Shown here: piece by piece, positions 2,761 through 56,528 of the stretch
Layout: every line of letters begins with the position of its first letter
How positions within the stretch are numbered: the first letter of the stretch is position 1
The notes under the pieces: model-generated
What the model was told of the DNA's origin: nothing
The model's input: only the letters and a program-made list of their open reading frames with translations
Databases searched by the model: none
Position numbers and translations under genes: made by a program
Assembly: GCA_016748015.1 (NCBI GenBank)
Contig: JAAOMT010000586.1
Location: 1 to 64,000 of the forward strand
Source: Geosiphon pyriformis uo1
Lineage: Eukaryota; Fungi; Glomeromycota
Length of the DNA: 64,000 nucleotides
Direction: 5' to 3'

Positions 2761-3036
2761 TAATGAAGTCATATTAAAAAAATACTGATTAAGCAAGCTA
2801 TCGATCTATAACCGTAGTAAGGTAAAGTGATAAGGAAATAATATGTGGGCGTACAGCGATGTGTGATATGAGCTTTCCAACAAAACCTCAATTCAGGAAA
2901 TAATCTTGTTCATTGGATTTATTAATAAATGCCTATGACTGCGGTCTTTTAAACAAAGTAAAAGTATTTAAAGAAAATATTGGTGCTTCTGCCTTTTTCC
3001 AGTTCTTACACTCTTACTTAGCTTTCATTTAAAAAA

Positions 3037-5022: not shown

Positions 5023-6534
5023 ATGGATCAAACAAAGGCCCCTCTGATAATATGGTTTCGAACAATTTTATCTAAAAATTCCAGCATCATAATTATTTTA
5101 CTCGCCATTTTATTGATGAGTACATATTCATTGCTCGGAAATTCATTGAAGTTTACTTTGAAAAGAAAATACGAAATGATTTTAGCAAAGCAAGTTTCCC
5201 ACATTAATAACCAACAAAATTGGAATAAAAAATTGGGTCCAATTTCGAATTTAGGGGATTTTCAAAACATTTTGAAACACACGATTGAAGATCAAAAGAC
5301 GAAAGAGTATCAGGAAACGCATGAACAAAGCATTGATACAAAACCTTCAATATTGAGTCCAAGAACATTGCCCGATATAAAGAAAAAGGAAATATTGGTA
5401 GCTTCAAATGACAAAACAGCACTGGATGAAATCAAGCTTCCCGTCACCGATTCAAGATTGAATGAATTTAAAAAATATTTATTTTACGCCCAACAGGCTT
5501 ATTGTCTTTCAAATGAATATAATTTATACCAAGGCATTCATGGTAATCAATTGAAAATTTTTCTCTCTCCACGAACTTAAAAAATTTGAATTTATAGAAT
5601 ATTCAAGAAATTTCACATGTAAAGAATATTAATTTCCAAAATAGCAAAATTAGAAAAAGTGGATGGAGAATTAATAGTCTACTTCAAAGGACCTGTAATA
5701 ACGAAAGAAAAATGGGAGAAAAGAATAAATGTTTTGGTCGATTACCCATATGAAGTCAAGGCGACTGTTGATGGAATATTTTTGGGACAATTCGTTCAAT
5801 TGGGTCAAATTCTACTTGTCAAAATTCTTTCTTTTTTTCGATATAATCCGACTTATCATCAAGTTCGATTAATCGGGCATGACATTGGTGGTGGTGAGAA
5901 TATTCAATTATTACAATATTTTTTTATTTGAATAAAATGAAGAAAAGATATTTTTACTTAATAAAATTTAAATTTGGGCATCATATTCAACTCTTTTTTC
6001 TTCAGTCCATGCTATTCTCACAGCTCTGGCAATAGAAAAATTCAACATGAATTTAGAAATTACGGTCTATACTCTCGGCCAACCACGAATAGGAAACAAA
6101 CAATTTTCACATTACGTTAATAAAAAAATTAAAGTGTACCGTATAACAAGGTCTGGCGATAATATATCACAATATCCACAACCTTCTGATATTTATTCGC
6201 ATCATGAACGAGAACATTGGATTTTACCTGGCGATTGTGATTGTAATACACCTGATCTGGTTTTTGAATGTCGAGGCAAGAAAAGCTCGGATTCAAATAA
6301 TGGGCAGGAATATTTCAATGAGCCAACGGTTTGTTAACCTATTTTGAAGTATATTAAAAGTATTATCGATTTTAACATTGTTTTTACTTTACCTTTTCGC
6401 GACAGTTGTGCAACAAGCAGGCATTCAATAAAAATCCATTCTCAGATGTTGAACATTGGGGTCCATACTTCGGTTACTATATGATTTGCCCAGATATATC
6501 AAAATCAATTCACATGCTTTCTCGAAATTCATGA
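5023..6534 (+). CDS. Class 3 lipase-family homologue, predicted catalytically inactive, N-terminal TM anchor; exons 5023-5542, 5645-5893, 6006-6328, 6406-6534 (~406 aa)
   Basis: GT-AG introns join the track ORFs in frame. Motifs AYC, VYFKG, IGHDIGGVHA (canonical GHSLGG), YTLGQPRIGN, RITRSGDNISQYP, YSHHEREHWI, EHWGPYFG. Hydrophobic segment IIIILLAILLM. Start ATG is a best guess. Confidence 0.85.
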
Positions 6535-31094: not shown

Positions 31095-32711
31095 TTACAT
31101 TATTAATATTCTGCTCGAAAACAGTTGTTTCTTACAAAATTGTGCATTTAAGACTTCCATCGATTCAGTATTACAAACTCCAAATGTTATACCAAAATAT
31201 GGTCCCATATGAGCTGCTTCTGGGTCCATTCCAGTTGTATTCTCTTGACCTAGATTGCAATTCTATTAATTAATCAGAGTAGCGTGTTTGATTAATGAAT
31301 AAAATTTATATTCAGTCATGAAACAATAAATATTTAAACCACAAAATTTACATACTGGATTCTCGCCATGACCGGTTAGAATGTAATTTTTATTCCCATT
31401 AACATTCTCATCTAAAAACCCAGTACAAGCCCATACCTCAAAATTATACGGGTTATTTGGATCAGGACATCCACAATCAGGATAATTAATCCAAAACTCG
31501 GTTTCATGATGCTGAAAACCCATCGTGCCAGCTCGTTCTAGATGCTCACGAGGCAAGTAATCATTTGCATGAGTTATTCGTGATATTTTGATATTGAGAG
31601 CATTGATAAGATTGGCGAATTGCGCGAGACCCAAGCGTGGTTGCCCAAATGTTGTTGTAATAATTTGCATGTCTTTTAAGAAGGAATTTGGTTGAAAAGA
31701 CTCGAGAGTTAATTCTAAGCTTGCTAGAATTGCGTAAACTTTTTCAATAAAGTTAGTCGTAGAAGAAATTTAGAAAAATGTCTTTAGAATTTTCTATAGT
31801 CATTTTATAAACTTCAAAATTTAATATTCTAAGAAAATTAATCATATAATAACCTCCACCAATTCCATGACCAGTTAATAACAATTGCCGTCTCCCATGT
31901 CCATTGGTTGAAGGTGGTCTGGCTAATTTCTCAATTTCGTCCAATAGAAGAGGTTTCATTGTTTTTATCTCACCCAACCAAGCCTGATCCAACACTGGTG
32001 CCACCGAGCTCATAGGCATAATTCGACGCAAATTATCATGCTTGTAGACTCCCACAAAAGATTTTCGTTTTTTCCATTGTCGTGGGGTTAAATCAAGGCC
32101 TTTAAAGTATACAATTATTTCACCTGTTTGGGAGACTTTATATGCATGAGCTTGGAGAATATTAAAGAAATGGGTTATTAAACAGTTAATTTTGGAATTG
32201 TTACAGAATATTACAAATCTTACAAAGAACATTTACCAATGACGCCTGGTACAACGTGTCCAATGGAGTTTGAATCTCTCATACAATATGGAATATTTGC
32301 CACTCGAGCCATTCTGTTAAAGAGAGACAAATCAGGGTCACTTGAAAGGATTACGCGTATTGGAAGGCTTGATAATTCAGGTTGTCCTAGATCTTCAAAT
32401 TGGCCTGCTATTTTAAAATTTTTGCTTCGTTTTGAACGAGCTATATCTGAGTATAGGGTACTAATATTTGGATTGAAGCGAAAGGAAGATTTTGAATTGA
32501 ATGAGACCATTCTATGCGGTTGAAAGAATGAAAGTGTTTTATTCACGAGAGACCAAAGTCTAGCCCTAAGAAATTTGCAAGAATCAAAAGAATTTAATGC
32601 AATTGAATCTGAGACATTTGGATGTAATGAATTAATCCAAATTAAAATCAAAAAAAATACAAAAAAAATCCATCTCTTGGATTGAAAAGTGGTTCGTGAT
32701 ATTAATGCCAT
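31095..32711 (-). CDS. Class 3 lipase-family homologue, predicted catalytically inactive, N-terminal TM anchor; exons 32711-32237, 32150-31854, 31738-31356, 31262-31095 (~440 aa)
   Basis: Same three intron positions and phases as 5023-6534. Motifs PYC, VYFKG, TGHGIGGVYA, TFGQPRLG, RITHANDYLP, FQHHETEFWI, AHMGPYFG. TM WIFFVFFLILIWI. The extreme 3' end could hold one more intron (gtaag near 31135). Confidence 0.85.
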
Positions 32712-34752
32712 AGATATTGGTGTTAAAAATTTTAGAATTGCCAGAACTAGAAAATCAACTACCACTTAAAACTTTATAAAATCAAAGACAAGGGACAAAA
32801 AAATCTCAGCCCAATTAATTAACAAACAAAATACAAATAACTATAAATGAAGAATTAAACTGATTTTGGAAAAAGAAATTCCAGCTTTATTAAGTTTGAA
32901 TATTTTCTTCCATTGTTTTAGAAGAATTCATACAAATATTGAAAAATTATGCGCATGTGAGTAGATTGATTATTGTGAAGACTGGATTTATATCGATCGG
33001 CACTCGGTGGAAAAGTCACCCGTTTTTTCTGTATGGGATTAAATCCTCCATTGAGATTCAGAGATCTGTCACATTAAGTCTATAGCTTGAAGATTGTCTT
33101 GCTAAAAAGTAATAATGTGATTAGGATTTTTAACAAAAGTGATTCATATAAACAATTCGATAAATGTATTCAAGAAACATGAAATAAAGTGTTACATAAT
33201 TTACACTAAATTTCATTTAAATTTAAAAAAGTTATATTTAAAATAAGTTTAATTATTAATCTTAGTATATTTGGCATCTTGAAACAAAACAATTTGGTAG
33301 TAAAAATTATTTAAAAGCTATAAATTAGAAATGCTCTAAATTAAAATTAATAAATAGACATGGCCAAATAAAATAAAACATATCTTTTGGAAAAAACTAA
33401 AGAACAATTGTTATAATATATTTTCGCGTATTAGATAAGTATGTTAAAAAAAGCAAATAAAATGTCGAGTAAAATTTTTATTAAAATTTCTAAAATAATC
33501 TGAATATACTAATAAACTCGTCAAAAGCATTGGTTAAACCAGCACGTAAGAAAGTGGATTATATTATTTCAAATAAACGCTTCGAATAATAATATTAAAA
33601 TATTATCCTTTTTGGTGAATTAAAATTTAAATTGTCTAATTTTGTTAATCAATTTATAGTTTTAATATTATTATAAAAATTTTGCTTACTTTTTATTTTC
33701 ATTAATTCAATGCTATTTTATTTTTTATAAATGTATCATAAATTTTTTATTAAAGAAATTATTAGTAATTTATGATAGATAATGATTATATTTTATGGAT
33801 CCATTAAAAAGAATCTTTAAATTTGGTTTAATTATCTGATTAGCAAGTAATTTCTATTATAAGATTTATATCTGGACCAAATGCTTTCTTAACTTGAAAA
33901 TTAATTCAAGCAAATATGACATATGAAAAAATTTAACTTAAATTGATAAAAATAGATTTTGATTTTTTTTTGACAAATTTAAGCAGTATGCCTCAATTGT
34001 CAGGTTTTATATATTGAAAAGCATTATAAATAAAATAAAATAATAAATATATTATGTAATATAAAACTGAACATTCTTTATAAAAGACATCTGTATTTTT
34101 TAAGGATCAATATTGTAACATAATCAAGCTTTCTTTACTTAAAAATTGCAGAAAATGATTTTAAAAATGCTAGTTGTGTTACTAAAGCATTTCTTTAGAC
34201 CAATTTACCTGAATTATTCACTAATTATTCTTAGTCTTGATTTGAAAAAATTCATAAAAATGTAGCCAAAAATTTACTGAATTAAAGCACTTTATGGTCG
34301 AGAAGTAAACAAGTGTTTTAGATTCTCTTGCAAAGAATTTAATAAAATTTATAAAGAATAAGCCAGAAAGATGTAAGAAACAAATTCTTTAATATTTATT
34401 AATTAATATAATTAGTTGGTTATATGTTTTTAAATAGTTATTTTGGAAATAATTTGTATAACAAGTTATTGAAATATTGTGTAATAATAAATTTTTTTTG
34501 ATATTATATATTAAGCAGTCAATAAAATTAAAATTAATAAAATCAATGTAAATTGTTCAGTTTTAATTATTATTATTAAATAAAAACTCAAATAAAAATA
34601 TAAGTGGATTTTTTTTTAATAATACAAAAAATCATTTGCGTTCTCATAATGAAACTTTATTTTATATTCTAAATAACTAGTTAGTTATTTACAGTAATTT
34701 ATTTATTTTTTCAATAAAAAATTGCTTTATCTTTTATTATTAACTTTATTAT

Positions 34753-36789: not shown

Positions 36790-38451
36790 ATCACAATGAA
36801 TGGTGGAGAAATAACTGCCAGTCGACGTCTTAAAAAGAAAACAAGTACTAATAAGCGAACGTTTTACTACTGAGATCGCAATACGCCGCTTTGTCAGAAA
36901 ACGTATCTCAATATGTTAGGAATTGGACTCATTTGGAAACCGTCAGAAATCATCTGGCAACGAATGGTATTGTGTCGCGCATTCACAGTAACGTAAAACG
37001 ACTGCCGCGATGGAAAACCAAAATAACCATTGATATTACCATCGCTACCGCCGTGAAGAATTTTCTCGAAAACTATGCTGAAATTCATGGGTTACCAAGT
37101 CCTGGTAAAAATGTTAATCGCATTACTCAATCGTTTACACTCTTGCCAGCTGAAACTAGTTACAAATCGGTCTATCGTAATTTTATTGCAGGTCTTGAAA
37201 ACAATAGCACGTTGAAATTGTTAAAATATGATGCGTTCCGAAGTTATGGCACCAATTAACGCCATATATTCAAATCATGAGTCCAAGAACGGATTTATGT
37301 GACACGTGCCAACATTTTCGGAACGGCCTACAATATAATGCTCGAAAGGAAGAAGCGAAAGATTTACTAAAAAGATACAAAGAACATTTAGTTAAAGGCT
37401 AAATTAGAGAGAAATTATTACAACAAAAATACAAAATTAGCAGAACAACAGAGGAAATTGGTAAACGAACATTTTATAACAAGAGGTAAAGCTGATTATT
37501 GTAGCGTTGATGCTACTGCTCATTATAGTTACGATTGAGCACAAAATGTTCACGTACCCCATTCCGATCAACAGGTAAGTAAAATATATTATCTCAGTCC
37601 GCGTAAAGTACATTTATTTGGTATTCAAGATGAAGCAGTAGGCGAACAAATTAATTACGTTCTCGATGAAGACGAAATTATCGGCAAAGGCCCTAATGGC
37701 ACACTAAGCATGGTATTCGACGGGATTAAGAAATTGAATAGAGGTGAAAAACATTTAAAGATTACTTGTGATAACGCCGGTGGTCAGAATAAAATTAATG
37801 CTACCATTTGATTTTATCTATATTTAGTAGTTTGCAGTTATTATGAAAGTATCGAACTAAATTTCATGGTACCTGGACATACTAAATTCAAATGTGATGG
37901 TAATTAAAAAACTCTAGAAAAACAACTGTAGATTGTGTGGACCATATTGTTGAGGTTGTGAAAAGATCGAGTACAGCAGGATTAAATAAAGCTCAGTGTT
38001 ATGACAACGGAAAAGGCTTTCAATACTTAGAACTTAACTCTGTATTGGGGATTTTCTTTAAAAAATTGAGTAGTTTGCAGAAATACCAGCATTTTCTATT
38101 TGAAGCAACTCGACCTGGAATTGTCAAAGCCCAGCTGGTTGCTAATAGTGCTTTTACTGAATTTAATTTATTGAAAACCAGAAAAGCAACTGTTTCTGAA
38201 ATTACTAAAGAAATTAAATCTTTATCAATTTTAATATTAACACCGCCTCCATTGGATTACAAAAGGCAAGAATACCTTTATCATAATATTAGCCCATTTT
38301 TCAGAGATGAATTTAAAGACATTACTTGTCCCAAGCCAGTATTAAATGTAATCAAGTAAATTTTATATTAAACAAAAAAATGTTTAAATAAACTTTGTTT
38401 TCTTAATTAATCGCACTTACGTTCAATAACTAAAATAACTATTTTCTCGTT
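36790..38451 (+). mobile_element. 5'-truncated, frameshifted Sola-like (probably Sola1) DDD transposase relic; coding remnant to 38359
   Basis: Across frames: PRTDLCDTC, HYSYD(TGA)AQNVHVP, YYLSPRKVHLFGI, GKGPN, ITCDNAGGQNK, FMVPGHTKFKCDG, EFKDITCPKP. Family name is from motif recall. The right end at 38451 (before AATT) is inferred. Confidence 0.7.
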
Positions 38452-40121
38452 AATTAATAAGTAAATGCTTAACATAATAACAATAGTAAAAACTGTTCCT
38501 AAACTTATTCAAGGAGTTCAATTAAATTGTTTTTCTCTATTTATTTGGGCTTCTAATCTAGCTAATTCTTCCTTTTTTCTTTGCAATTCTTGTTCGTGCA
38601 GAGGAGTTCCACAAATATTTTTAATTTCTCATTCTTTTTGTTCGATCTCACTTCGTAATTGAGAAATTATTTGCTCCTTTCCTCAGTTTCTTTCTCTTCA
38701 TTCTCTCAATGCTTGTTCTTTATGTTTAAGATAGTCTTTATCACCTCTTCATTTTAAATAGTAAGCTTCAGGATCTCTTAATTTTTCAGCTATTCTTTCG
38801 TTTTCCATGGTGCCAACAAATTTACCGGCTTTATTAAGTGGTCTTCCTTCTCCGCGGTTTTTGCCTCATCATTTTTGTAAAGTGAATTTGGGAAACAGCA
38901 CAAGAGTAATATTATCCTCTTTTCACCCTTTTTCTAGTTGATCTATTTCAGAAAAGCTTTCTCCCCAATTCTTTCGTTTTTCTTTTTCATTCATTAACTT
39001 ATTTTCTTTTCCTACTTGCAGGGAAATATAGAAATCGTGGCAATTAATTTCTTCTTTCATTTTTTGCATTAATACCTGTAATACTTCGCCAAATTCTTTT
39101 CAAATTGAGGGTTCTAGTGATAAGAATTCGTCATTTGAAACACGTTGCTTTGGTTCAATAGTAGTGTATCCAAAAGCTATTTCGTTGTGTAATCTCGAAA
39201 TCACTGCTTTTTTCAGCAATAATATTATCTGCAGTGGGTTGCAAACCTTTTTCGGTTAACTCTACTTGCTAGGGAGTGGCTGATTTATATTCTTTTGCTC
39301 AACACTCATTTCCGTAACTTTCTTTGTATTTTGGAACTATACGAGCAAAAAAATGAGGAGAGTTTTGACCAGCAAGGTTTCCTGTTGGTATAGTAAAGCG
39401 GAAGCCTGCAGGATGGTAAACTTTGTCTATCTTTTTCATGGTATCCTTAAGAACTGGCAATATTTCGTTTCATTCATCGATGTTCATAAATCTTACGTCT
39501 TTAATATGCTTTTTCCTTGACATCACACAATGGGCTTTTGCATTGGGACGAATATTGGCAAAAGTAAAAAAACTTCCTCCTAAGTCAAATACATAGCAAT
39601 CATACAAACCCTTTTCGCGAAGAACTACACTGTCACAGCCAAGGCAGGCTTCTTTACAATCAGATTTGAGACAAGCATAATTAGGTGTATTGTCTAAATT
39701 AAAGGTAAAATGTGTGGAATTGCTCGCCTTTTTCAATTTTGTTTGAACAATTAGTACACCAAGAACAAACATGGTGTTTGCTGTCTTCATAGACACTAAC
39801 ATCTCAATGAAGATAGATTTTACATTGAGGGCAAGTGGCGACAATTCTGTCTCACTTTCATTGGCCATGCTCGTTTAACCGTTTTACTCTTCAAGGCCAA
39901 TCACCACCCTCTTTATTCTTAAATTTTTCTATAGCTTCTCTAAAAATTCTCTTTTTGTTCCTTTCTCATTTTGCACATTTATTTAGTTTTTGTTGCACCA
40001 TATTTTGTGTGCAATCTCAACAGCAAAATTTGTTGGTTCTTTCTTCAGTGTTAGGTACTGGAACTGAAAAATTATTCTCTTCCTTTGTATTATTACAATT
40101 AAAACATTCTCTTTTAGTCAT
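38407..40121 (-). pseudogene. Genetic-code-4 (TGA=Trp) bacterial-type gene: CxxC-rich N-terminus, two degenerate HIT domains, coiled coil, C-terminal TM anchor; probably from a Mollicutes-related endobacterium
   Basis: Manual translation from ATG 40121 to TAA 38407 gives ~570 codons with 18 TGA, 3 TGG, two frameshifts (~39708, ~39210) and one TAG (39271-39269). No introns. HIT1: CLGC...FANIRPNAKAHCVMSRKKHIKD...EWNEIL...GFRFTIPTGNLAGQNSPHFFARIVPKY. HIT2: NIIAEK...FGYTTIEPKQRV...IWKEFGEVL...DFYISLQVG...ITLVLFPKF. Ends FNWTPWISLGTVFTIVIMLSIYLLI. Confidence 0.88.
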
Positions 40122-40250
40122 GATTACTTATTAATATAGTAAGTTTTAAGCAAAAAAAAAGAGCAAAATAACTATTTATTTAAAAACGAAAAGAACTTTT
40201 TAAATTAAACTGAGAGTAGCACATTAATATCCCATTAATAAAGCTGAATA

Positions 40251-40422
40251 CAGTCAACTCTTTTTATAAGGACCTTTTTTATAAGGATCCGCTGTTTATA
40301 AGTACCACCTGCGCTTTCCCAAATCGTAGATTCTTAATGATTCTACGCTTCATATAACGACCGCTGCTTATAACGACCGATTTTGCTTTGCCCGAGGTGG
40401 TCGTTATAAAGAGAGTTGACTG
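40251..40422. mobile_element. pogo/Tigger-type MITE (172 bp) with TA target duplication
   Basis: TA|cagtcaactctttttataaggacc ... ggtcgttataaagagagttgactg|TA. Internal repeats of the ttataa(c/g)gacc motif. Confidence 0.9.
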
Positions 40423-40442
40423 TAGATGATATTTTGTTTGTA

Positions 40443-40709
40443 TTAATATTTTTCGTCCAGATGTTTTTGTCTTTTGTTTTGTAATGGTACATCATTATCC
40501 TGCTTTCTTCTCTTAATGTTTATTATTTTTCGTTCTTCTTGGTAAATTTCATAAGTAATTTTTTCTTTATCTAGATATTCCTGGAGAGTTTGGGTATTAT
40601 TGATTTTAAAAACGTATGGAGCAATTTTTTCTCGTTCTTTTTTTAGAATGCTTCTAATAGTACTGTAATTCTTGGGTTCCATGGTGGATTTAATGTAAAC
40701 AAGTTTCAT
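40443..40709 (-). CDS. Hypothetical Lys/Glu-rich protein (88 aa), origin unclear
   Basis: Open ATG-TAA frame with protein-like composition, co-oriented upstream of the code-4 gene. It has no Trp codon, so the genetic code cannot be assigned. Confidence 0.35.
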   Translation of the reverse strand: MKLVYIKSTMEPKNYSTIRSILKKEREKIAPYVFKINNTQTLQEYLDKEKITYEIYQEERKIINIKRRKQDNDVPLQNKRQKHLDEKY

Positions 40710-41108
40710 ATTATAATTTTATATAGAGATAGGCCTAATAATAACTGCAAGTAAAACGTTTATCTCATTTTGACACCAAATTTAATACAGATTTAAATAT
40801 AATTCAGCTATTATTTAAAATTATAAAACTTAACAAAAAAATTATAAAATTTTTTAAAATAAATACAGTTTATATATAATCAATTACTTAAGTTAATAAA
40901 GCTATGCTAAATAAAAAACACAAAAGAATTTATTAACAATATTGATATTTTTTAAATTTTAAAAAACTTTTTTTTGTTAAATTAAAACAAATTAGTTAAC
41001 TATTGTTTATATTATTTATAAAAAATATTTTATTTTTAATATTTAAATTCAAAATACTTTTAAGATTTACAATAATAAATTTATTTTTAATAATTAAACT
41101 TTTTTTTT

Positions 41109-41859: not shown

Positions 41860-44800
41860 CATTAATCTCCTGACCACAATAAGAGCAGAAGATTTTTTGT
41901 CATAGAAATAGCTTTTTTTTTTATTTCTTATCCTTGGTTTTTACAGTTATTTTTCTTTTTATATTTTTTTTTGTTGCTATGGATTTGGTAAGCTTTTCTG
42001 TTGGTAGTTTAAGTATTGGTTTGGCTGAATTGAGGACCCAGTCTAGTGGCAAGAAGAAAGCTCATGTGAATAGTGTGTACTCTCACAGTCTATCATTCAA
42101 GAAGCTAAAGAAACCTAAAACTAGTAATGTGGTTAACTTGTCTGTTGGCCTTATAAGCTTGGGAGATATTGGTGATACCAATGTTGAGTCTGTAGTGTCT
42201 TGAAGAAGTAAAGTTAAAAGTGTTTATAACAATGTAAGTGGTCTTTCAGATGTTGAAAATATGGCGAACATAATTGCTGAAGAAACCAGTTATGCAGAAT
42301 CAGGTAAGGATGATAATATTGATAAAACTATGCTGAAAAAAACTTACACTCAGACATATATGCTGAGCAATCTACTAAAGCAACCTGTGTTTAAACATAT
42401 GAGTAATGATGATAAAGTGCTGGAACTTCTTTTTCATGTAGTTGTTAGATTTAATCAATTGTTAACTGTCAGATCACATGTCCTGAATAGGTGCAATTTT
42501 GAACCAGTCAAATTTTTTGTATTGGATATTGAGTTATCTGCTGTACTGGGTGAAATTATTAGTGATAAATTAATTGCAGTCAAAAAAATTTTTTATTGAG
42601 TTGATGGTTTTAGGAAGGCTTTCACTCCCTTAAAATTTCCAGAAATTATTAGATCATTATTTATATTTAAAATGAGTTTAAAAAAGGCTAAAGAAATAGC
42701 AATTAGTGGGAAGATTTTGGTTAATGATGATCTCAGGAAAGTAAACAGCCAATCGGATCAGGAAGTAATCATCAAGGAGATCTCAGTTGATCTTTCCAAA
42801 TCGGCTATGGAGTCTGTTTTTTCCAAGTTTGGCAGAATTATATCAATTAAGATACAACTGATTGGTCTATAACAAAAGACTTTAATAGAATATGAATCAT
42901 TTGAAATAGCTAATTTGGTCACAGCTAAGTGGTCTGTTTTTTATGAAAAAAAATTCTGTTTGTGTAGCAAAGACAGTTGAAGATAAACAATTGTGGACAT
43001 TAAGAGATTTACATTGGGTCTTGCTTTATACTTTTCCAATTGAAACTATGGCTATAATTTTTCTGGTTTGTTGAAATTATATGATGGGAAAACTTGTTTT
43101 ATTGGCCATAATTTCAGTTCATACATGAATGATAAATGTGTGATAATGTGTTTTGCTAATGAAGCATCTAAATTGGCTGTTATTAGTTCTATTCTAGTGT
43201 TTAAGAGTGTAAATTTATGCTGAGCTGGTCTTTCTTTGGTCTATTGCACCAAGTATAAACAATTTGGTCATATTTCTGATGTGTGTTCAATTGGTGAGAA
43301 TTCTAGAATTCATGATAAGTAGGTGGTAACTTCTTAGAATTGTGTCTACTTGGCCAATATTTATAAAAAAAAGCAGACATTTATTGCTTATCTGGTTTCT
43401 TTTGGTGACAAGACTTGGGTCCAAATTGCTGGTAGTTTTTTCTCTTGTGTGATCTCGTCAGATTCTGTTGGTGCTGGTTTATCTTTGGGTATAAAACCCA
43501 TTTCAATGGTCTTCAATTTTTTTGGTAATCCTTATTTGGTTGATTATTTGGCTTCTTTAGAACACTTTTTGAAGCTTTTGTCAGATCAGGTTTTTGTTAT
43601 CATAAAAAAACTGACTTGTTAAATTGGTGCCTTTGGTAAATATGCTTTATGTATTTTTTCTGGTTGCTCAAACATCTTTGGCTTCTAATTTGAATTTGGA
43701 TATAACTTTAGATGTTATGGTGATGTCTTCTGCCCCCTCTTTTTTGGTCATTATGGACACAATCACTGACTTTAGCTTGAGTAATTTTAAAGTTTTGATT
43801 ACCAAGATGAGTAGATTGGAATCTAAGATGGTGGCTTTAGAAGTATCAGTTAAATTGGTTTTGAACAGGTTGAATTGCTTGTGTTCTGATTTGGATTTGT
43901 CAGCTTTTTTTACTCCTCAATGAGTAATTTAGTATAGAAAATTGCTACATGTAATGTTTGCAGTATCAATGTTTCTGCTAAGTAAAAAGACATTATCTGT
44001 TGGCATAAAAATTCTGGAAATTTGGTTTTGATAGTTATGAAAACAAAGTTAAGGTCTAGCTATAGACCATTGATTAAGGATAGATTTAGTGGGGTTAGAG
44101 TTTTTTTATCTGAATTGAACAAAAAGTTTCTTGGTGCTGGAGTGGCAATTATTATGGACACTTCTCTGGCTTATTATGTGTGTAAGATTTTTGAAGTGCC
44201 TGGCTGGCTTTTTTCTGTCAAGTTACTTTTTAAGAATAAATTTTTTGTTTCAATTCTGGGGTTTTATATTAGTGCTTCCCTGACTGTTTGTTTTTCTCAG
44301 ACTGGTAATATCAATTCTCTGATAGCTAAGACTATGAATGAGTCTTTTTTTGTTGTATTAGGTGAGAATTTTAATGAGAATGGTTCCTGCAGATGTGTGA
44401 GTTTTAAGAAGTGTCTTGATTTAGAACTGGTTAATTCTTTGTTGAAATGTTTATTTGTTAAGAATTTAACATGAAAAAATTCAAGAAGTGTAGAAAAGAC
44501 AATTGATTACATGTTCATTTCTTTAAATTTAGTTAATGCAGTGGTAAATCACAATGTTTTGAATATTAGTAAATATTTTAATACTGATCACTATGTGGTT
44601 TTTATGTCTATAGGTTTAGGTGGGCTTTTGAATATACAGTTAAACTTTATTTGCAAGCAAGCTAATAGGAACTGATAAAAATTTGATTTTAAAAGTGCTG
44701 ATAATATGAAGTAGAATAATTTCAAAGATGCTGTTACTCATAGAATATAAAAAGTATATTAGCATATAAATTAGCCAATCAGAAGTAGACATAGTAAATA

Positions 44801-47800
44801 TGGAATTTTAGGATTCCTCTCAGAGGAATTGCAGGATTCCAAGAATTTCAGAATTTTCATATAAGAAATTGCAGAATTTCAGAATTCCAGGCTAGAGAAT
44901 TGAAGAATTCAAAGAATCTCATACAATAAAATTTATGTATATAGCAGTAGTATTAGAAGCTAAAAAATTAGTCAAGTAGACTTCAAAAGTAAAGAAGACT
45001 AAGAATCAGTAAAACTCTCAGAGTCAATTAGACTCGCAGGTCATAATTATTAAATATCTTTTCTTTAAAAAATAGAATACTATAACTTGAAGTAAAATCA
45101 CTTTCATATTAATAAAATTATCCATTATTCTTAAATCCATGTTATTATTCACTACTTAACCTGCTGGCACAATAGCTCTTGATTATGGCTATTAACAGAA
45201 CACTTATTTTTTATTTTATTTTCTTTATTTCTTTATTTTCTTTTATTTTCTTTTATTTTCTTTTGTTATTCACTAAATTGATTAAAAAGATTAAGTACTA
45301 AGTTATTGATGTCAAGGATTGCCTGGTAAAAGACTTCTGCAAATAGCTAAAGCACGTAAAAAAATTACAGATTACTTATCAGAGAAATACTGGCCATTAA
45401 GCTGAAGAAAGAAATTAACAGAATTGCAATTCTGGGAAGCTATAAATAAACAACTATTGAATCTCTGTCTATTATACAAAAGACTCAACAAAAAACCTTC
45501 AGATAACAACACCTTTAGATTACTATCATCGCAAATAGCTTTTAAGCACCAAGTTATGAGTTTTGTTATTTGATTTGAGACCCCAAATAATTACCTGTAA
45601 CAGCACTACAGCTGCCAATACAGCAATGTTCTCTGATGAGTTTGCAATTACTATGAAGCTTTCAAATCTGTGTGCCATGTGGAACATTGTTTGCAGAATA
45701 ATAACTCTTTTGGCTAATAAAATATTCAAAAAAAAATGGTTTAAAGACTATAATAATATTTTCATCAGAGATTCTTCTAGGTTTCATAAACTGGAGCTTT
45801 TAGTTTTAAGAATTGTCAAGACTTTTCATGAAAAGAGTTCTAACAGATTTGTGTTCCTTATGGAATGCTAGATTTTTTTGGACAGTGTTAAGGCTTTGGT
45901 TATTTAGGGTCTTATAGACTTGGGTGTAAACTTTGATCATGTGCATTCAGCTCTTTTCAGTATAAAGAAGTTATATTGTGTCTTTAAGTTTGCTGAGTTT
46001 TTGCGATCTAAGAAGTTGGGTATTAGGTCAGCCATTAATAAAAGAATAAAAAATTTTGCAGTTGATAAGGATTATACAATCAAAAGTGTGCTAGAACATT
46101 CTTTTAAAAGAGTAGTTTTAGACTATCTGGTCATTAAGAATAAACTGATTCTAAAATCTGAAATAGTTAAGACTAAGGTAGATGTAATCATAGAAAACTA
46201 GACTAAAAAGCATAAGGTGGTGGCAAATTTCCTTAGTGATTGGTCTTACCAATACTGACCTTTGGAGTATGTTTTTAATGATGCTTTTTCTAATGTTATA
46301 TGTTCAGTTAGTTTTGATGAGTTGCTTAGTATGGTTTCTGATTTATCTGATGGCAAAGCTGCTGGTCTTTCTGGAGTCTCAAATAAGCTCTAAAAGCATT
46401 GCAACAAATTGGTTTTGGATATGCTTTTGGTGCTTTTAAATTTTTGTTTGTCTTATAAACAGGTGTCTAGTGCTTGAAAGGAAGCTTGGGTTTCAATAAT
46501 TCCCAAGCCTTATGAGTGAAAGAAGGTTTTTACAAATACTTAATCTATTGTCTTTATTAAAACTACTTGCAAAATCTTTTCTAAGATTTTTTTGGACAGA
46601 ATTTTTACAGCATGTAACACTTTTGATGTTTTATGAGAGAACAATTTCTTGGTTTTAAAAGATATAATAACACAGTCTCCTATTTTTGCCATTGATTTAG
46701 TTATTAAAGACACTTTGGAAAAGAACTTTGAGCTTTGGTTGGTCTTACAGAATATGTAAAAGACCTATAATTCTATTAGATAAGAGCATCTTAGGAAGTG
46801 CTTGGTCAGAATAAAAATGTGTGACAGATTCATTAAATTTTTTGGTGGAATTCACAATGGTCATGTCAACAGGGTTATGACTAATTTTGGATTGATGGAT
46901 AGATATCGAATACATAATGGTTTGGATCAAGGGGAGGTGTTCTTACTTCTTTTTTGGCACATATTTTATGATTTTCTTTTATGTAAAGTCAAGAAACAAG
47001 AAAGTGTGTGTGAATATAGATTGAATTTCTATTTTATTGCCAGGACTGGTCGTGTTGAATTTCAGGCTGAATTAATATTTTTTCTTACTGCTAGTGCTTT
47101 TGTCGATGATACAATCTGAGTTAGTAGCAGTCAGGTTTCAACACAACACATTCTTAATATTGCTAATAAATTTTTCAGGATCAATAATATTTCCATTAAT
47201 AATGATAAGACAGTAGTCATTCCTATTAATTGTCTTTCTTTGTCAATTAGTAGTCTACTTATTTTTATTACCAAAAAAGGTAAATCTCATTATTATCTAG
47301 GTATCTTTTTGTTTATTGAGAGTTTGTTGAAACCTAGTTTGACTAAAGCACATTCAGATGTTAAGTTTTTTGCCAATTTTGTACTTAGAAAAGTCATTTC
47401 AGATAAACAGTTCTTGTATTTAGTGTTAACTGTTTTTTATTCTATTGTTAGCTACAGGATACAGTTCAGCTTTGTTTCTATTGGGATGTGTAAAAAGTAG
47501 GATGCTTTAATTTACAAGAGTTTAAAATTGAAATTTGGTCTGCCTCTTAACTTTCCCAGCAATGTACTTTATTACTCTTTATTGTATGGTCTGAAAACTT
47601 TTAAGCCAGTACAGGCTAAAAGCAAAGTAACTTTTGTTGTATGTTTTGTAAACTCTGTTAAGATATTGGGTTGTTTGTTTTCACATAAGTCTCTTGACTT
47701 GTAGGCTCTAAGTTGGCATCTGCTTTATCTTTTGAGTTCTTCAGCTCATGTAAGGGTTAGTCTTTCTAATAATTTTTTGACAAATGTGATTTGTATTTTT

Positions 47801-49600
47801 CTTGGGTGCAAGTTGTCTTTGAGTGGTCCTATAATCAGTTTTTTTTATTTTTGAAATAGTATATCTATGTTGTTTATTCTTAGTAAGTCTGAGTTCTCCA
47901 AATTTTTACCTTCACTTCAATGGTATGGTATAGTTTTTGTAGAGCAGCTTCATAATCAGAAGGGTATAGTCTTTAATTGGAAAACTTTTAGATACTGAAA
48001 AAAGCTGAACTCACATGGCTCTGTTTCTGATTGGTTTAAGCTTTTTGTTGATTTTCTAAATAATGTGGCTTTTTTTACTGCTGGTTCTTCTTCTTTGGGT
48101 AGTATTGAACTTTTGTGCATTTTGAAGTCTAGTAAGTTTAGATATGTTGGTGGTAATTTGTTGGAAGTTGCAGTTAACAGCCTTTCTGTTTATATGGATG
48201 GGTCTCTGATGAACTTAGGGAGTACTAATATAAGAGCTGAAGCAGCAGTTTTTTTCAAGAATGTAAATTTGGGTTTGAGTGTTAGGATTTCTGGTCTGTT
48301 GTCTTCTACTTTGGCAAAGCTGCAAGCTATTGTATTGGCTCTCAAATGTGTTCCCTCTCTTAGCTCAGTTCATCTTTTTATGAACAGTTAAGCAGCCTTA
48401 AATGCATGCAGATTGGAATTGAGTCTGGTATGTCCAGATTTTCAGAATTGGTGTTGGATTAAGCATCAGCATATAGTGAACATTATTAAAAAAAAATTTA
48501 AGTATTAGTTGATACAAAGTTAAGAGTTATTTAGGTGTCTTAGGTAATAAACATGCTAATACACTTGCCGATGTTGTTTCTTTTTCCCTCTGGTGCCTTC
48601 TTCCTATTTTAGAAGAACATTATATTTTGGTAATGGCAATATTATTTCTGGTAATTCTAGACATTTTATTTGTGAGATCTTTTGGTTTATTCATTGTGCA
48701 CACAGAAAGATTAGTTCTGGATTTGGAGCTTTAGATAATAGTTTGCACTTGGATATTGATTGGCCTTGTTTGTCCTCAGTTTGACATTCTGATTTACACA
48801 TGGCTGCTGACTTCATTAGTAGGCTTACTGCTGGTGCTCAAATATACTTTATGAAAGCTTTGCATTGTTAATTGCCAGTTGCTATTTGAAAGCACCTTTA
48901 TAACAAGTGTTACCCTAGTATATTGTGTTTGTATTGTGGTGATGTTGAGGTTTCAGATCATGTTTTTTCTTGTATGGTCAATAAGTCTGTTTGTTATTAT
49001 TTGTTGGATGCCCATGTGACTGTTTGGTGTGCACTTTTTAGTTTGTTTCTTTTCTTTTTATGTGTGTTTCAATTATTGTCCTCCTGTATTTCGAATATTG
49101 CAGTATGTACAGCTCTTTACAAAAACTTTATTTTTAAGGATTGGTTTTAAAAGGCCACATTTGTTTTTAAAGATATTAAAGTTACAAGTTGGAAGATTGT
49201 GGACTTTGTATGTTCCTTCTGTCTTGCTTTTAGGGAAAAGATTTGGTCAGTCCATGCTAAACACCAGGCTTTTATAGAGAAGAATAGGCTGATACCATGT
49301 AATGATTTGATTCTAAAATTGGTTTCTAGACTGTTTTCATTGTTCTCTGCTGGTGTGGTCAGATTGTTAAGTATTAATAAAGTGTTTGGTGTTGTCTTTG
49401 AGTTTTGCATATCACATTTATTTCTTTTAGATATTGGGAACTCTGTCTCTGTTTATATAGATGCTTAGTGTTGTTTTGATCAGCTTAAGTGACTGGTTAC
49501 ATGTAAAAAATACATGATTTACACCTAGTTTAGATTAATTATTTGATGTATTATACTAGGCAGTATTTGGCTCTCACTTATTAAATAATAATAATAATAA
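41860..49600 (+). mobile_element. LINE A: near full-length degenerate non-LTR retrotransposon (ORF1 ~41979-43923; ORF2 43920-49468 with APE, RT, RNase H, CCHC), interrupted by a solo LTR
   Basis: KIATCNV, VLGENFN, TIDYMFIS, NTDH (APE). KAAGLSG, LVLQNM, GLDQGE, AFVDD (RT). VYMDGSL, STLAKLQAI (RNase H). CLYCGDVEVSDHVFSC. (TAA)n tail. Many stops. Confidence 0.93.
44732..45602. mobile_element. Solo LTR (871 bp) inserted in LINE A ORF2
   Basis: Termini TGTTAC...GTAACA. LINE coding resumes across it (compare LINE B). Contains a CCAAT box (agccaatcaga), gaatt(t/g)cag repeats, a TATA-like tatatag and aataaa. Flanks ATGC/GCAC may be a decayed 4-bp TSD. Confidence 0.85.
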
Positions 49601-49769
49601 AAAAATAAAGTTTAAAATAATATAATTCACAAATAAAAAACACTTATAATTAAATTTATTAAAAATTATTTAAATATAATAAATAATAAAAATAATATAT
49701 ATTAAATAAAAACATAAATTTTATTAATAATTAATAATTTATTATTATTATTATATATATTATTATTAT

Positions 49770-52700
49770 TATTATTATTATTTTTATTTTTTTATTATTT
49801 AATGAGTGAAGTCCAAACACTATTTAATGCTATATATCAAAAGAAATGATCTAAATTAAGTGTAAATCATGCACTTTCTACACGTGACCAGTTACTCAGG
49901 TCAGTTAAAACAACACTATACAGCTATGTGAACTAAAACTGCATCATGAATGTCTGAAAAAAACAAATACTGCTTGCAAAAACCAAAACAAACACTGAAA
50001 GTCTCAACAACACCCAACAAATCAACCACACTGGCAGAAAATCTCGACAACAAACCAGGTACTAAAATGGGAGCCAAATCACCTAAAGGAATTAACCTAT
50101 GTTTTTTCATGTATGTGCAATGTCTCGTATGAACCAACCAAATGTCATCTCTGAAGGCAAGACCCAGAAAACGTGTGAAATCCACAATCTTAAAACTGGC
50201 CACTCTGGGGTCATGAAAGACATTGACAGCCTCATGAAACCAATTATTAAAAACAAAACCCTTGTGAAGAGCCATTAACAATAAGGAACCAGAAACACAG
50301 GATGACAAAAGTCACAATATACTTGAAGAGGCGAGGGATAAGCCAAAAAGAGCCTTCCAAGAGCTCACATGGGACTCCAATAACTGTCACCAAGTAGAAT
50401 CATCAACCTTATAGGAAAACACATAATCTGAAACCTCCACATCACCACAATACAAACATATTACACTAGGGTAAAGTCTATTATAAAGGCACTTTTAAAC
50501 AGCCACAGGCAGCCGACAATGCAAAGTCTTCATAAAATAAGTAAGGGCATTAGCCGAGACTCTGCTGGTAAACCCAGTGGCCATATGCAAATCTGAATGC
50601 CATACCAGAGAAGATTATGACCAATCAACCTCGAAAACCAAATCATCCACCAAAAACCTCGAACCCAAACCAATTTTCCAATGTGCATGGCAAATGGAAC
50701 AAAAAATATCATGAACAAAATGCTTAGAATTGCCAGAAACTGCACCACCATCGGCCACCAAAAAGTGCTTATCCAAGTGAGAAGGAAGAAACCAATCAGA
50801 AATAAAATCAGAACCAGCAATCTCATCAGCATGCTTATTCCCCACCACACTTAAGTAACCTTTAACTTTGTGCCAGCCAACTCTCAAATTCTTCCCACAA
50901 ACAATATTAGCAATGTGCTGGCACTCTATCCAACACTGATTGTGAAAGTCAGAACCCAACAAACCCAATTCAGACTTGCACGCATCCAAGGCAGACTGAC
51001 TATTTGAAAACAGGCAAACAGAACTAGAATGGAGAATGCACTCTAGGGCCAAGATGATAGCTTGCAATTCCACCAAGATAGATGACATCAAACCCGAAAC
51101 ACCAACATTCAAGTCCAGATTAATGTTTTCAAAATAAGCAGCAGCATTAGCTCTACAGCCAACTGTGCCCAGATTCTTCAAAGACCTTTTTATGTAGACA
51201 GACAAACAACCAGTGTCAACCTGTGAGAGATGATAGCAAATAGAAAAAAATACACTAGAACCAAGAATACACGAAGAACCAACTACATCCAAAACTGATG
51301 GGGGAGCAGAAAAGGGAGTCACATCATTGAGATACACAGTAGAAAGCTTAAACCAATCTGGGACAGGGCCATGGGAGTCCAACTTTTTCCACCACTTGAA
51401 TGTGAACCAACTAAAGACAGAACCATGATGATCATAAAGTTGATCAACAAAAGCTATACCATAATGCCAGAGAAAAGGGAGAAAACTAGAAAATCTTGAT
51501 TTGCTCAGAACCTCTGACATGGGCACTTCACCATTGAAGCAAAATGCACTGACAAAAAAGCCACCCAGAGACAATTTACAATTGAAAAAAATGCAAATCA
51601 TGCCTGCCAGAAAGTTATTAGAAGCACTGATACAAATATGAACAGGAGAACTCAACAGGTGAATAGAACGTCAACACAAAACTTGCAAATCATGAGATCT
51701 GTGGGAAAATAAGCAACCCAAAACACCATTGGAATTCGCAAAACTGATAAGGGAGACTACTTTGTTCTCTGACTAAATCTGCAAAAAGAACTTCAGATCA
51801 TAAAAGAAGAGATAGTGAATTGTATTACTAGGAAAATCGAGCGGCAGACCAGACTTAAGCTTTAAATCTCTATGAATCATAGCATCCCATTTGTTGTACA
51901 CACCAACTGGAATGGAGTTAAACTGGGTCCTATAACCAACAATGGAATAAAGTACTGCCAAAACCAAATATAAGAATTGTTTATCTGAAACAGCCTTCCT
52001 CAGAACCAGATTGGTGAAAAACTGAATGTTTGAATGTGCTTTAGCCAAACTAGGCCTTGAAAGGCCCTCTGTTGAAAAAAAAATACCCAAATAATGATGA
52101 AACTTGCTCTTTCTAGCAATAGCAATGGGCACACCACTAATGGAAAGACAAAGAATGCTGATTCTGCTATTAATAAGGATGGCCACTGTCTTGTCATTGA
52201 TCCGAAAAAATTCACTAGCAACATCGAGAATATGTTGAGTGGCACTTTGACTGCTGCCGACCCAAATAGTATCATCGACAAATGCGCCAGCAACAAAAAA
52301 AGTAGAAAGTCTAGCCTGAGACTTAGCACAACCACACCTGGAGACAAAATGAGAGTTAAGTCTATAACCACATGCAATCTTCTGCTGCTTGACTTCACAC
52401 AAGAGAGAATCATAAAATATGTGCCACAAAAGAGGAGAAAAGACCTCTCCTTAATCCAAACCATTATGCACATAATAACTACTCATCAGCCCAAAATTCA
52501 TTATAATTTAATTGGTGTGATTCTGATGAATGCCACCAAAAAACCGAATGAACTTGCCACACATTTTAATCCTGACCAAATATTTCCTAAGATGCTCCCA
52601 GCCAACCAAGTTATACACTTTCTACATGTCTTGTAAAACAAGCCAGAATTCACGGTTCTTTTCCAGAGCATCTTTAACAATAGAACCAATAGCAAAAATG

Positions 52701-55700
52701 GGAGATTGAATAGTTGTACTCTTCAAAACTAAGAAGTTGTTACCATGAAGAATGTCAAATACACTACATGCCGAAGAAATCTTATTAGAGAGAATCTTGG
52801 AAAGAATTTTATGAGCCATCTCGATTAAAGCAATAGGATAAGTATTTGTCAGCACATCTTCCCACTTATATGGCTTGGAAATCATCGAGACCCAAGCCTT
52901 CCTCCAAGAACTGAGTACCAATTCATATAACAAACAAGAATTCAAGAGAACTAAAAGGATATCTAAAACAGATCTATCACAATGCTTCCAAAGTTCATTT
53001 GAAATGCCAGAAAGGCCAGCAGCTTTGCCATCAGACAGATCAGAAACCACTCCAAACAACTCATTAAAACTAATTGAATTCATTACACCAGAAAAAGCTT
53101 CATCAAAAACATAATCCAGAGGCTAATATTGATGACACCAATCACTAGAGACATTAGTAACCACTTGATAGGAGTGAGTCCAACCTTCCATAATTTTGTT
53201 CACCCTAGACTTCACAGGATCAAGTTCCAAAATTAGCTCATCACCCACTACCAAGTGGTCCAAAACTACTTTGCAGAAAGGATGCTCCAAAACACTCCAA
53301 ATAGTATGATCCTTGTTCAACTCAAAGCTCTCCATTTTTTTGTCAATCACTGACCTAATCTGAGACTCTTTAGCATAGACTGATTCTGATAACTTGGACG
53401 AACAGTAAGATTTTCTGATTCTGGCCAAAGCTAACCAAATAGTGTTAAAATGGGAACCCAAGAGAAAAAGAGACTTAATAACAGAGGCATTAGCCAGATC
53501 AAAGCCACCCCACAAATCAAGTAGAGAGACAAACTTCCCATGAAATACCAGACATGACGCTTTAACAATTCTCGACACCAAAAGTTCTAATTTATGAAAC
53601 CTAGAGGATGGCTCATTAAAGACACTATTGTAACCCTTGAACCACTTCTTTCCGAAAACACCTTCAGCTGACAAGCACATTATTTGATGAAAAATGTTTC
53701 ACATTGAATCCAGACCTGAATTTTCTGAAGCAACACAGAACTCATCATGAAACATGGCAGCATTAGCCACCGTATCTTCTTCAAACTTGATCTACTTAGT
53801 CTTATCGGCACCCTTAAAATTATATTTTTAACAATTCTTATTCATCTGTTTATGCAACAAGTTCAGACACATGTCCAGAAGGCCACCAAGACCCACAGAA
53901 ACAGAAATGGCATTATGATTAGTGTTAAAGTACTCATCAACAACAAACACATCACAATCCACTACCGCATTAACCAAATTTGATGAGATAAACAAGTAAT
54001 CAATAGTCTGGTAATACCCTGAGAATTGCTCTATGTTGCTACCTTTGCAAATGAGCTCCCACCCAAAGAATTGACCAAGCCCAACTCGAAACATTTTTTG
54101 AAGCTAACACTCTTATGAGAACTGTCTTTATTAAAATTGTCACCCAAGACGATAAAAAAAGACTCATTAACAGCCTTTGCAATCATAGAATTAACATCAC
54201 TTGCTTGAAAAAAATGTATTTTCAGGGATGCTCCAGTATACAGCCCCACAATCGACACAGAGAGTTTGTTTCCGAAGAGCAACTTGATAGAGAAAAGCTG
54301 GCCAGGAATGTCCAAAATTTTACACACATGCTAAGCCAAAGAATTGTTCATAATTATCACCACACCAGAACCTAAATGACCTATGTCCAAACCCAAAGTA
54401 AAAATCCTGACACCATCAAACTTGTTCATGATCCATGGATGGATCTTACCTTTCAGCTTAGTCTCAGTAACAATCAAAATCAGATTGTCTATTTCCTTAT
54501 GCCAATAAATAACATTCAATTATTTACTAGAATTGTTCAACCCATGAATATTGCACATAGCAATTTTCTAAACTAGACCATTCATTGAGAAGAGGGTTGT
54601 AAATTTGCATTACCAACCAGAGCCAAACTATTAAAGTGAGCAGACAAGCATAACACAGATTTGGAAAGGCCTTCCAACATATTCTCCAATTTGATGACAT
54701 GAGAGATGCTGACAAATTTGAAGCCATAACAGTCTCACCACTAGTGGCTTTACTCGATCCCACTCTCATCACTATATCCTCCCTTTGATTCTGTGATGGG
54801 GGGGTCATTGACAGCTGATATCCAGGGCTAGGCTGGGAAACCACCAGCACAAGTGAATCCAACCTCTTAACCAACTCACCAATTTGTTCTGCGAGGCTGA
54901 TAAGACTGCTTTCAATACTGTTTAGTCGTTTTTCCAAAACACCATCAACACAAAGGAGAGGTTTATTATTATCAGTAGAACCAAGAGTAAAACAGACTAC
55001 CAGAAAGAACATGGAGGGGAGGTGTGCCAATCACAGAAGCCCAAGATTTTCTACCAAAAGCCAAAGGCTGGAAAATAGAGGCAGATTTCTTCTCATAAAT
55101 TTTCACCAACCTAAACTTATCCTGAGCTAAGAGAGGAGTCCTCTTGCTTTTAAGACTAGGAGACACAACAGCTGACTTACAAACCAAAAGAGAGTAACCC
55201 AAAGAATTGCAAGCAGAACATAAAGGGGTGACCAAACGCGACCAGTGGAGACCAACTCTTCTTATAACTGGGGTATTGGCTATGGTCCAAGTTATGTCAA
55301 TTTCAGAACTAAAACACACAGTGGCACAGTGTACATAATTGTAGTTGACAGAATTGCAGTCGATCACACACGTTTTCCCATTCACAGAGCCAATGAAATT
55401 CTACAGATCATGAGCCATCATTTCTACAGGGAGAGTGTAGAGCAATGCCCTAAATTTATCTTTAGTATCTTACGTTTGTTTATCAATGTCAGCCCTGGCC
55501 ACACGAACTGCATCTTTATTAATAAGAATAGACCACTCAACAGCCAATAGATCAGCTTAATCTTGATCTTCTAATTCAATAATTGCTTTTTGCTACAAAC
55601 TGACCAGTTGCATTTTGATTATCTTAATCTTCTCAAACTTAGACACAGCTGCATGCACAGTCTCAACAGAAGTTCCCACAAGAATTTCTTTCAACACAAT

Positions 55701-56528
55701 TGCCCGATTCAAATGAGTGTTGACAGGGTGCTTAAGATCGGTATTTACCACAATACCACAATCATTTGTCAATCTTGCTGCAGTCATCATCACCTTTTCA
55801 GAAGTGAAGATAGCATGAATAATCCCACCAAATTTTGAAGAGATAGAGGCCCTCTCAAAACCATTTACACTTGAAAAAATTTTTCTGACAAAATTCAATT
55901 TTTCCTAAGAGGATTTCTTAGCGATAGCCACAAAATCAATATCTAAAGCAAAAGATTTACAAACAAGAACCTGGATGGAAGGCTTAAAAGAGAAAGAAGG
56001 TAGGAGGAAAACAGACTCATTCAAAACACCATCATTATCATTGATAGCATCATAGTTGATTTTTTTCAAAGGCTTTCTCAAAGCTTTCACAGTCTTAATA
56101 CGTGAGCTTTTAGGCATTTGGTTCAGGTCTTCAGCCCCAAGAGCACCACCTTCCCCATAATTGAAGCTGGTTTCCTTCATCAAACACTCCTCTTCCATAT
56201 CAATATTTTCAGTCTCAGTAGTATCACCAGCCTCAAAACCCCTTGAATGACCACCAAACACATTATCAGAAACTCTATCACTACCAATTTTTTCAACCAA
56301 AACACCACCCTTTCTTTTCTTCCTTGACAACTCGAGTTGGGAACCACTACCAAAACCAAAAACTTTAACAGCTTTCCTCATGACAGCAATACTAGGGCCA
56401 ACAGTGGTCTCGTAATTAAGCAAAAATGGTTTGAATTTATCATATTGAATGGTAAAAAACTTTTTTCAAAAAATTATTTTGGCTCTTTTTGGGAATTTTG
56501 GGATGAACGAGAAAAAGAAGATTATGCC
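49770..56528 (-). mobile_element. LINE B: full-length degenerate non-LTR retrotransposon, least decayed copy (ORF1 ~56423-54582; ORF2 54585-49916)
   Basis: IVTETKL, VLGDNFN, TIDYLFIS (APE). KAAGLSGISNELWKH, PIALIE, WLVLQDM, AFVDD (RT). VELQAI, LFSNSQ, WHKVKGY..VVGNKHAD (RNase H). ORF1 knuckle remnant CSACNSLGYSLLVC. (TAA)n tail. Confidence 0.95.

Follow-up and report, generated by a model that had tools for sequence, protein, structure and literature searches.

A Sola1 transposon family reading UGA as tryptophan in the nuclear genome of Geosiphon pyriformis and its relatives in Mycoplasma-related endobacteria

Sola1 transposons are known from Rhizophagus (PMC5751038), and a 4-bp AWWT target duplication is given as their hallmark (Bao et al. 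2009, as cited in PMC3845634). Gene transfer from fungus to Mycoplasma-related endobacteria (MRE, Ca. Moeniiplasma) has been described (PMC10507103). An earlier note on the DNA studied here took this direction as the one usually emphasised; transfer from MRE to Diversispora epigaea has, however, already been reported (Sun et al. 2019, as cited in PMC8227670). The presence of Sola1 in Glomeromycotina is thus known, and so, separately, is transfer in each direction between fungus and MRE. In a literature check that was incomplete and had key Geosiphon papers outside it, no paper was found on a code-4 (UGA=Trp) eukaryote-type transposon or on a vehicle for MRE–fungus transfer.

The elements described here share with Sola1 transposons a PF25273 DDD transposase of about 590 aa, short terminal repeats beginning with GG and the 4-bp AWWT duplication. 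They differ in their length of 4–9 kb, in a transposase and operon-like cargo written in code 4, in a fungal intron-bearing arm, in a small NLS-like ORF and in having relatives on bacterial chromosomes. Published cases of MRE–fungus transfer involve the same partners and both directions, with kinase and LRR genes recurring, but they concern single genes without a vehicle, whereas the genes here are still in code 4, bounded by a transposon and present in dozens of diverged copies. The Crinkler-like AACRNL adjoins hAT elements (PMC12957317). Pack-MULEs, Starships and ToxhAT, like the Geosiphon family, hold host genes (of Crinkler type too) between transposon ends and give non-autonomous derivatives; they keep to one code and one compartment, whereas the Geosiphon family joins spliceosome-dependent genes with UGA=Trp genes. 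Wolbachia inserts and NUMTs consist mostly of donor-genome pieces that were taken up passively. They resemble the present case in being symbiont-type DNA that decays in host chromosomes, but the Geosiphon insertions show the signatures of a transposase, and no core symbiont genes were found.

The window analysed was a stretch of 64,000 nt (positions 1 to 64,000 of contig JAAOMT010000586.1, G. pyriformis uo1). A remnant of a whole Sola1 element extends from 36794 to 40737, and these ends agree with the junctions guessed beforehand at ~36.8 and 40.2–40.8 kb. It begins with a code-4 remnant of a Sola1-type DDD transposase on the plus strand (36794–38356), which lacks about 65 codons at the 5' end, is frameshifted and has TGA at three conserved Trp sites. 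A code-4 cargo pseudogene follows on the minus strand (38407–40121). Between this gene and a small Trp-free ORF on the minus strand (40443–40709), whose NLS-like tail is altered in the window copy, a Tc1/pogo-like MITE of 176 bp (40249–40424) was inserted at TA. The MITE has 26-nt arms (92%), its site is empty in the sister copies L132 and L016, and no second copy of it was found in the Geosiphon assembly (G000). Read depth in other runs also covered the MITE. The small ORF belongs to the terminal module of the element, and 40513–40737 is many-copy sequence of that module. The window copy has lost its left arm and the 34-bp terminal inverted repeat at either end, all of which sister copies keep.

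The nuclear location proposed in the earlier note was supported. Annotated protein hits at 76–77% identity point to G. pyriformis, or a fungus very close to it, as the host. SSU genes of 18S size are present on the contig, which is longer than 1 Mb, and the locus is surrounded by lipase, Zn2Cys6, ubiquitin and LINE sequences. In run X1, which may come from the assembly's own sample, contigs identical to the window had a depth of 57–99, the left flank one of 99, and the right junction was bridged by one of these contigs (40663–41069); at the left junction no bridging piece was among the run X1 pieces listed. A chimeric assembly was rejected on this depth, equal to that of the nuclear flanks, and on the bridged right junction. 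Neither MRE-type rplB nor bacterial 16S was found in the Geosiphon assembly, which indicates that bulk MRE DNA was not brought along. COX1 was not found in the assembly either.

The frame of the cargo gene was followed on the minus strand from 40121 to 38410. Over 568 codons we counted 18 TGA, 3 TGG, a single TAG and no TAA, identical to the earlier count; fixed frames across the cargo region contain 9–24 TAA each. Against a background of 0.34, the probability that TGA makes up 18 of 19 stop triplets in this frame is ~5e-8. Under table 4 the sequence is one gene in three pieces. An intact 568-aa homologue is present on L131, a soil-metagenome contig, with 84% nucleotide identity to the window and with 21 TGA and 1 TGG. 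Its TGA sites mostly coincide with those of the window gene, and wherever it has Trp the window copy reads TGA or TGG. The Trp columns align among L131, the window and the 65%-identical copy on C669, with TGA and TGG exchanged at three of them, and pN/pS between the window and L131 was 0.27. Far from having TGG at these sites, the intact homologue is richer in TGA.

The window copy of the cargo gene is dead, as the earlier note had proposed. A +1 frameshift lies near 39714 and a −2 frameshift near 39206, GAG has become TAG at 39269–39271, and a 39-bp deletion near 38442 has taken away the true C-terminus and stop. Both frameshifts had been ascribed to homopolymers; this holds for the one near 39714, next to a T run, but not clearly for the other. 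Retention of CpG relative to neighbouring LINEs was reproduced, with an observed/expected ratio of 0.64–0.65 in the cargo region and 0.04–0.29 in the LINEs at 42–56 kb. The frame also keeps 22 CAA, 1 CAG and 2 CGA unmutated. Because these 25 codons are intact and TAA is absent from the frame, hypermutation was rejected as an explanation of the TGAs. C-to-T erosion was seen in old cargo copies, as in L018, where TGA has become TAA. GC3 of the cargo genes is 0.21–0.24, an MRE-like value.

The cargo protein has a Cys-rich N-terminus (five CxxC motifs in the intact homologue), two HIT-like domains that are similar to each other (pairwise test, E 5e-5), a charged coiled region and a hydrophobic, transmembrane C-terminal segment. 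A Pfam search of the cargo pieces found nothing; proteins containing TGA were searched piece by piece. Resemblance to HIT proteins is weak (PDB 3imi at E=0.011; Atlas HIT-clan matches 0.86–0.90). The match to HIT hydrolases (PF01230) falls on their triad-bearing region and the two internally similar domains are shared with them, but the triad of the cargo is degenerate and Cys-rich and membrane-anchor parts are added. The HxHxH of HIT is reduced to its first His, the only one kept in all aligned cargo copies; the region reads H-F-F-A-R, or H-F-Y-M-W in the C669 copy. From its sequence, the protein is probably a membrane-anchored, catalytically dead pseudo-HIT, with nucleotide binding as a putative function.

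The earlier note had read the locus as an integrated MRE fragment. Its code and its nuclear location stand, but the gene proved to be cargo of a many-copy Sola1 transposon whose transposase is itself in code 4. A 4.5-kb region of the window gave 49 matches across the Geosiphon assembly and a piece of the transposase 118, and the 34-bp terminal repeat gave 94 matches compared with 0 for a control. Other code-4 islands, for which the earlier note had suggested a scan, were found in the assembly: the window cargo gene lies in at least four other elements, among dozens of element copies. It adjoins the transposase on C790, C657 and C701, and on C669 it lies in a 5.2-kb element with perfect terminal repeats and ATAT duplications but no transposase. 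Target duplications on full copies are ATAT (C648, C669, C702, C718, L134), AAAT (C790b) and ATTT (C633), and the fungal flanks differ from copy to copy. The sister transposase copy L019 matched PF25273 (E=1e-17), a domain that we take, from its motifs, to be a Sola marker. A DDD transposase, AWWT target duplications and terminal inverted repeats identify the family as Sola1. Short non-autonomous derivatives of 0.4–0.5 kb with perfect ends also occur. The commonest code-4 cargo of the family is a different protein with a D-W-D-E-C motif near its start (L006:3087–4016, L032:4223–5200 and others) and pN/pS mostly of 0.2–0.5 among copies; it is putatively similar to a HAD-type phosphatase.

In 20 nuclear transposases, five Trp sites hold 54 TGA and 32 TGG, toggling in both directions, and all remaining sites together hold 40 scattered stops. 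The 190 pairs gave a median pN/pS of 0.17 with a lowest pS of 0.16; the window copy has a pS of at least 0.32 to each other copy. Most values above 0.4 involved copies with visible erosion, L014 and L021 among them. Since ratios near 1 are expected for dead copies within one nucleus, divergence took place mostly while the transposase was made with UGA=Trp. The share of TGA among Trp codons is 0.62 in the transposases, 0.86–1.0 in Geosiphon cargo and 0.74 in MRE genes, compared with 0/11 in host genes and 0/14 in Crinkler exons, and it tracks the A-ending share of Lys, Glu and Gln codons, as for a synonymous codon. TGA in the family is a synonym of TGG under purifying selection. The nuclear-clade transposases checked have a GC3 of 0.39–0.41, which exceeds that of host genes as well as that of MRE genes (0.22–0.29) and of the MRE transposase (0.25); this suggests that the nuclear clade may have spent a long time outside a typical MRE chromosome.

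Homologues of the transposase are annotated in assemblies of Ca. Moeniiplasma glomeromycotorum, one of them a few kb from rpsS, rplB and rplW. Both MRE copies use code 4; their ends are TIR-like and preceded by ATAT, and they have restriction-modification or LRR neighbours. On MRE contigs there are also LRR genes that match the LRR cargo of nuclear elements. A quick maximum-likelihood tree (SH-aLRT only, no bootstrap, midpoint root) placed the Geosiphon transposases and copies from two other assemblies in one clade (SH 99), sister (SH 90) to the clade that includes the MRE copies; jointly (SH 98) these clades were nested among standard-code Sola-like proteins. No MRE chromosome copy fell inside the nuclear clade in this tree. 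The nearest Sola-like protein checked for its code around the two clades, L038, is a 2.3-kb relative in the sister clade with ATAT flanks and uses the standard code (0 TGA, 8 TGG). A single recoding event in MRE would be the simplest reading of tree and code. In the MRE loci examined the cargo gene had no match, and outside Geosiphon its homologues were found only on the short metagenome contigs L131 and L132. Because no MRE chromosome with the cargo was found, its MRE origin is argued from code, codon composition and company. Exact patterns found no transposase relative in GTDB, where a query with MRE rplB returned no MRE genome.

Several further relatives were noted. L036, a contig of Ambispora leptoticha, has a code-4 Sola1 transposase (7 TGA, 0 TGG) annotated as a single spliced fungal gene, with an MRE-like gene beyond a TIR-like end of the transposon and a fungal-type gene 1.5 kb downstream. 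L044 (GCA_009771465.1) belongs to the nuclear clade and has an arm with a fungal kinase; its code-4 ORFs are intact even though its CpG ratio is 0.00–0.14 throughout. P0241 and P0242, in the cluster of P0014, are Sola-like transposases on short contigs labelled as Desulfobulbaceae and Thermodesulfobacteriota MAGs; they are eukaryotic DNA that was mis-binned or else another Sola lineage in bacteria. Runs X2, X3 and X21, which cover a pair of rhizosphere metagenomes and a second organism, contained numerous variants of both the transposase and the small ORF and a few of the cargo; the window flanks were absent from these runs.

Full copies have a left arm of fungal type, 2–4 kb long and within the terminal repeats, with Crinkler (PF20147, E 2e-18) and kinase genes. 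These genes use TGG only, contain GT..CTAAC..AG introns and have fungal relatives; they were searched exon by exon, with exons unjoined and unrepaired. Most full copies also carry the small ORF, whose intact form of 85 aa is Trp-free and has a ferredoxin-like fold and a conserved bipartite NLS-like tail. It occurs in 882 protein clusters, Dentiscutata included, and was not found in the copies on MRE chromosomes. The fold is a common ferredoxin-like unit without a specific match (best Z 7.7). A second assembly with fungal-looking flanks, JGI 3300063414, contains elements of the same design with 33 of 34 terminal-repeat positions identical. Two full copies there, at separate loci, are 97% identical end to end with near-neutral differences, which is an indirect sign of transposition. 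Comparison with a third copy gave a pS of 0.2 and a ratio of 0.2 for the transposase, and for a Crinkler exon a pS of 0.19 and a ratio of 0.9, the frame being open in two of three. This co-divergence indicates that the intron-bearing gene moved with the transposase during its code-4 selection.

We favour, with a probability of roughly 0.7, the reading that a Sola1 lineage passed from a eukaryote into MRE, was recoded, gathered MRE-type genes, is translated in a code-4 cell, likely an MRE, and repeatedly inserts in the fungal nucleus. Tree and code support the step in which a eukaryotic Sola1 would have entered MRE and been recoded to UGA=Trp, and code and GC3 that in which it would have gathered MRE-type genes, the window cargo among them. 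Insertion signatures are plain at nuclear AWWT sites; transposase made in the bacterium would have inserted the copies there, and the small NLS-bearing protein possibly assists its nuclear entry. Nuclear copies, untranslatable there, would decay or be moved in trans, the latter suggested by the short perfect-ended derivatives. Some copies may return to MRE with fungal genes on board, as the co-divergence of Crinkler arm and transposase suggests, and such return trips are likely. MRE are the most likely translating host of the code-4 genes; we infer this translation, the nuclear entry of the transposase and the return trips from the combined pattern. A broader proposal is that the family is a two-compartment shuttle, needing the endobacterium for its transposase and the fungal nucleus for gaining and keeping intron-bearing Crinkler and kinase genes, and carrying genes in both directions; this we put forward tentatively, at a little under even odds. 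Two points above all lack an explanation: no MRE copy was found within the nuclear clade, and the transposase GC3 of ~0.40 exceeds that of both MRE and host genes.

An element autonomous in the nucleus, with UGA read as Trp in the cytosol by readthrough or a recoding device and the code left over from a single ancient stay in MRE, would account for the higher GC3 of the transposase, for Crinkler arms with introns that diverge in step with it, for the NLS-like small ORF and for the short derivatives with perfect ends. We consider it unlikely, since cargo genes with 15–21 TGA have remained open and selected, which is beyond leaky readthrough, and TGA acts as a free synonym of TGG. Nor was a decoding device seen. 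No TCA-anticodon tRNA was among the 62 top-scoring host tRNA genes, a list that represents a floor, both host tRNA-Trp(CCA) have a normal 5-bp anticodon stem, and no tRNA-Sec scored above the cut-off. Host-wide recoding of UGA was rejected, with no UGA-reading tRNA among the 62 read. No tRNA genes were found within the elements, and an element-encoded suppressor tRNA was rejected on this ground. As a separate observation, contig C202 (10.5 kb) has clustered, duplicated tRNAs for Arg-TCT, Tyr, Leu-TAA, Ile-TAT, Phe and Lys (225–660, 5130–5525, 10060–10491), in contrast with the dispersed tRNAs of the host.

Mould mitochondria also use table 4. This shared code has been pointed out before (PMC10507103). 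Translation in the fungal mitochondrion or in a mitochondrial plasmid, from which the nucleus would be reached, with the MRE copies as a side branch, would agree with the missing MRE copy in the nuclear clade. It is quite improbable given that the sister clade sits in MRE chromosomes, and that the cargo is MRE-like in GC3 and its LRR genes match those on MRE contigs. No mitochondrial copy was seen in the assembly, which is without COX1. Passive, NUMT-like capture, in which break repair would have taken in a piece of MRE chromosome with the transposon just part of it, would suit the window copy without terminal repeats and the MRE-like gene outside the TIR-like end in Ambispora; it appears very improbable, as sister copies end precisely at terminal repeats with target duplications and the assembly yielded no MRE core gene. 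For the element family as a whole, target duplications, exact ends and some 100 terminal repeats largely refute it. An artefact, either assembly with contaminating MRE reads, which are common in fungal assemblies (PMC11423566), or TGG-to-TGA change in a standard-code gene, of which the eroded L018 might be taken as a sign, is extremely improbable in view of the nuclear depth, the bridged junction, the different fungal flanks of each copy, the MITE and lesions unique to the window copy, the spared CAA, CAG and CGA codons with no TAA, and the intact homologues richer in TGA.

If the shuttle proposed above is real, it would give the known exchange between fungus and MRE a physical vehicle and, as MRE switch hosts, would also carry genes between fungal species. 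The favoured reading offers a concrete vehicle for gene movement, so far unexplained, between uncultivable MRE and their mycorrhizal hosts. It would mean that a protein or DNA made by the endobacterium gets into the host nucleus, a path that could become an engineering route for AM fungi or MRE. The family shows a cut-and-paste transposon of eukaryotes in adaptation to the code of a bacterium. It has a built-in tracer, since the choice between TGA and TGG tells where a gene last underwent translation. Islands of this kind end up mis-annotated as intron-riddled fungal genes or thrown out as contamination. The window locus contributes a distinct cargo with an intact homologue outside.

Other features of the window were recorded. 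Two paralogous, intron-poor, standard-code ORFs on the plus strand (798–1847 and 3022–4113) consist of a ubiquitin domain followed by a weak PARP/ADP-ribosyltransferase-like match (E 0.054 in the first). Class-3 lipase-like genes lie at 4915–6337 (plus strand) and 31266–32765 (minus strand) and have motifs of GHxIGG type in which the customary Ser is missing (GHDIGG, GHGIGG). Across 41883–56500 there are decayed LINE-like elements on either strand, with RNase H at 50618–51670 and with CpG almost gone (o/e 0.04–0.29).
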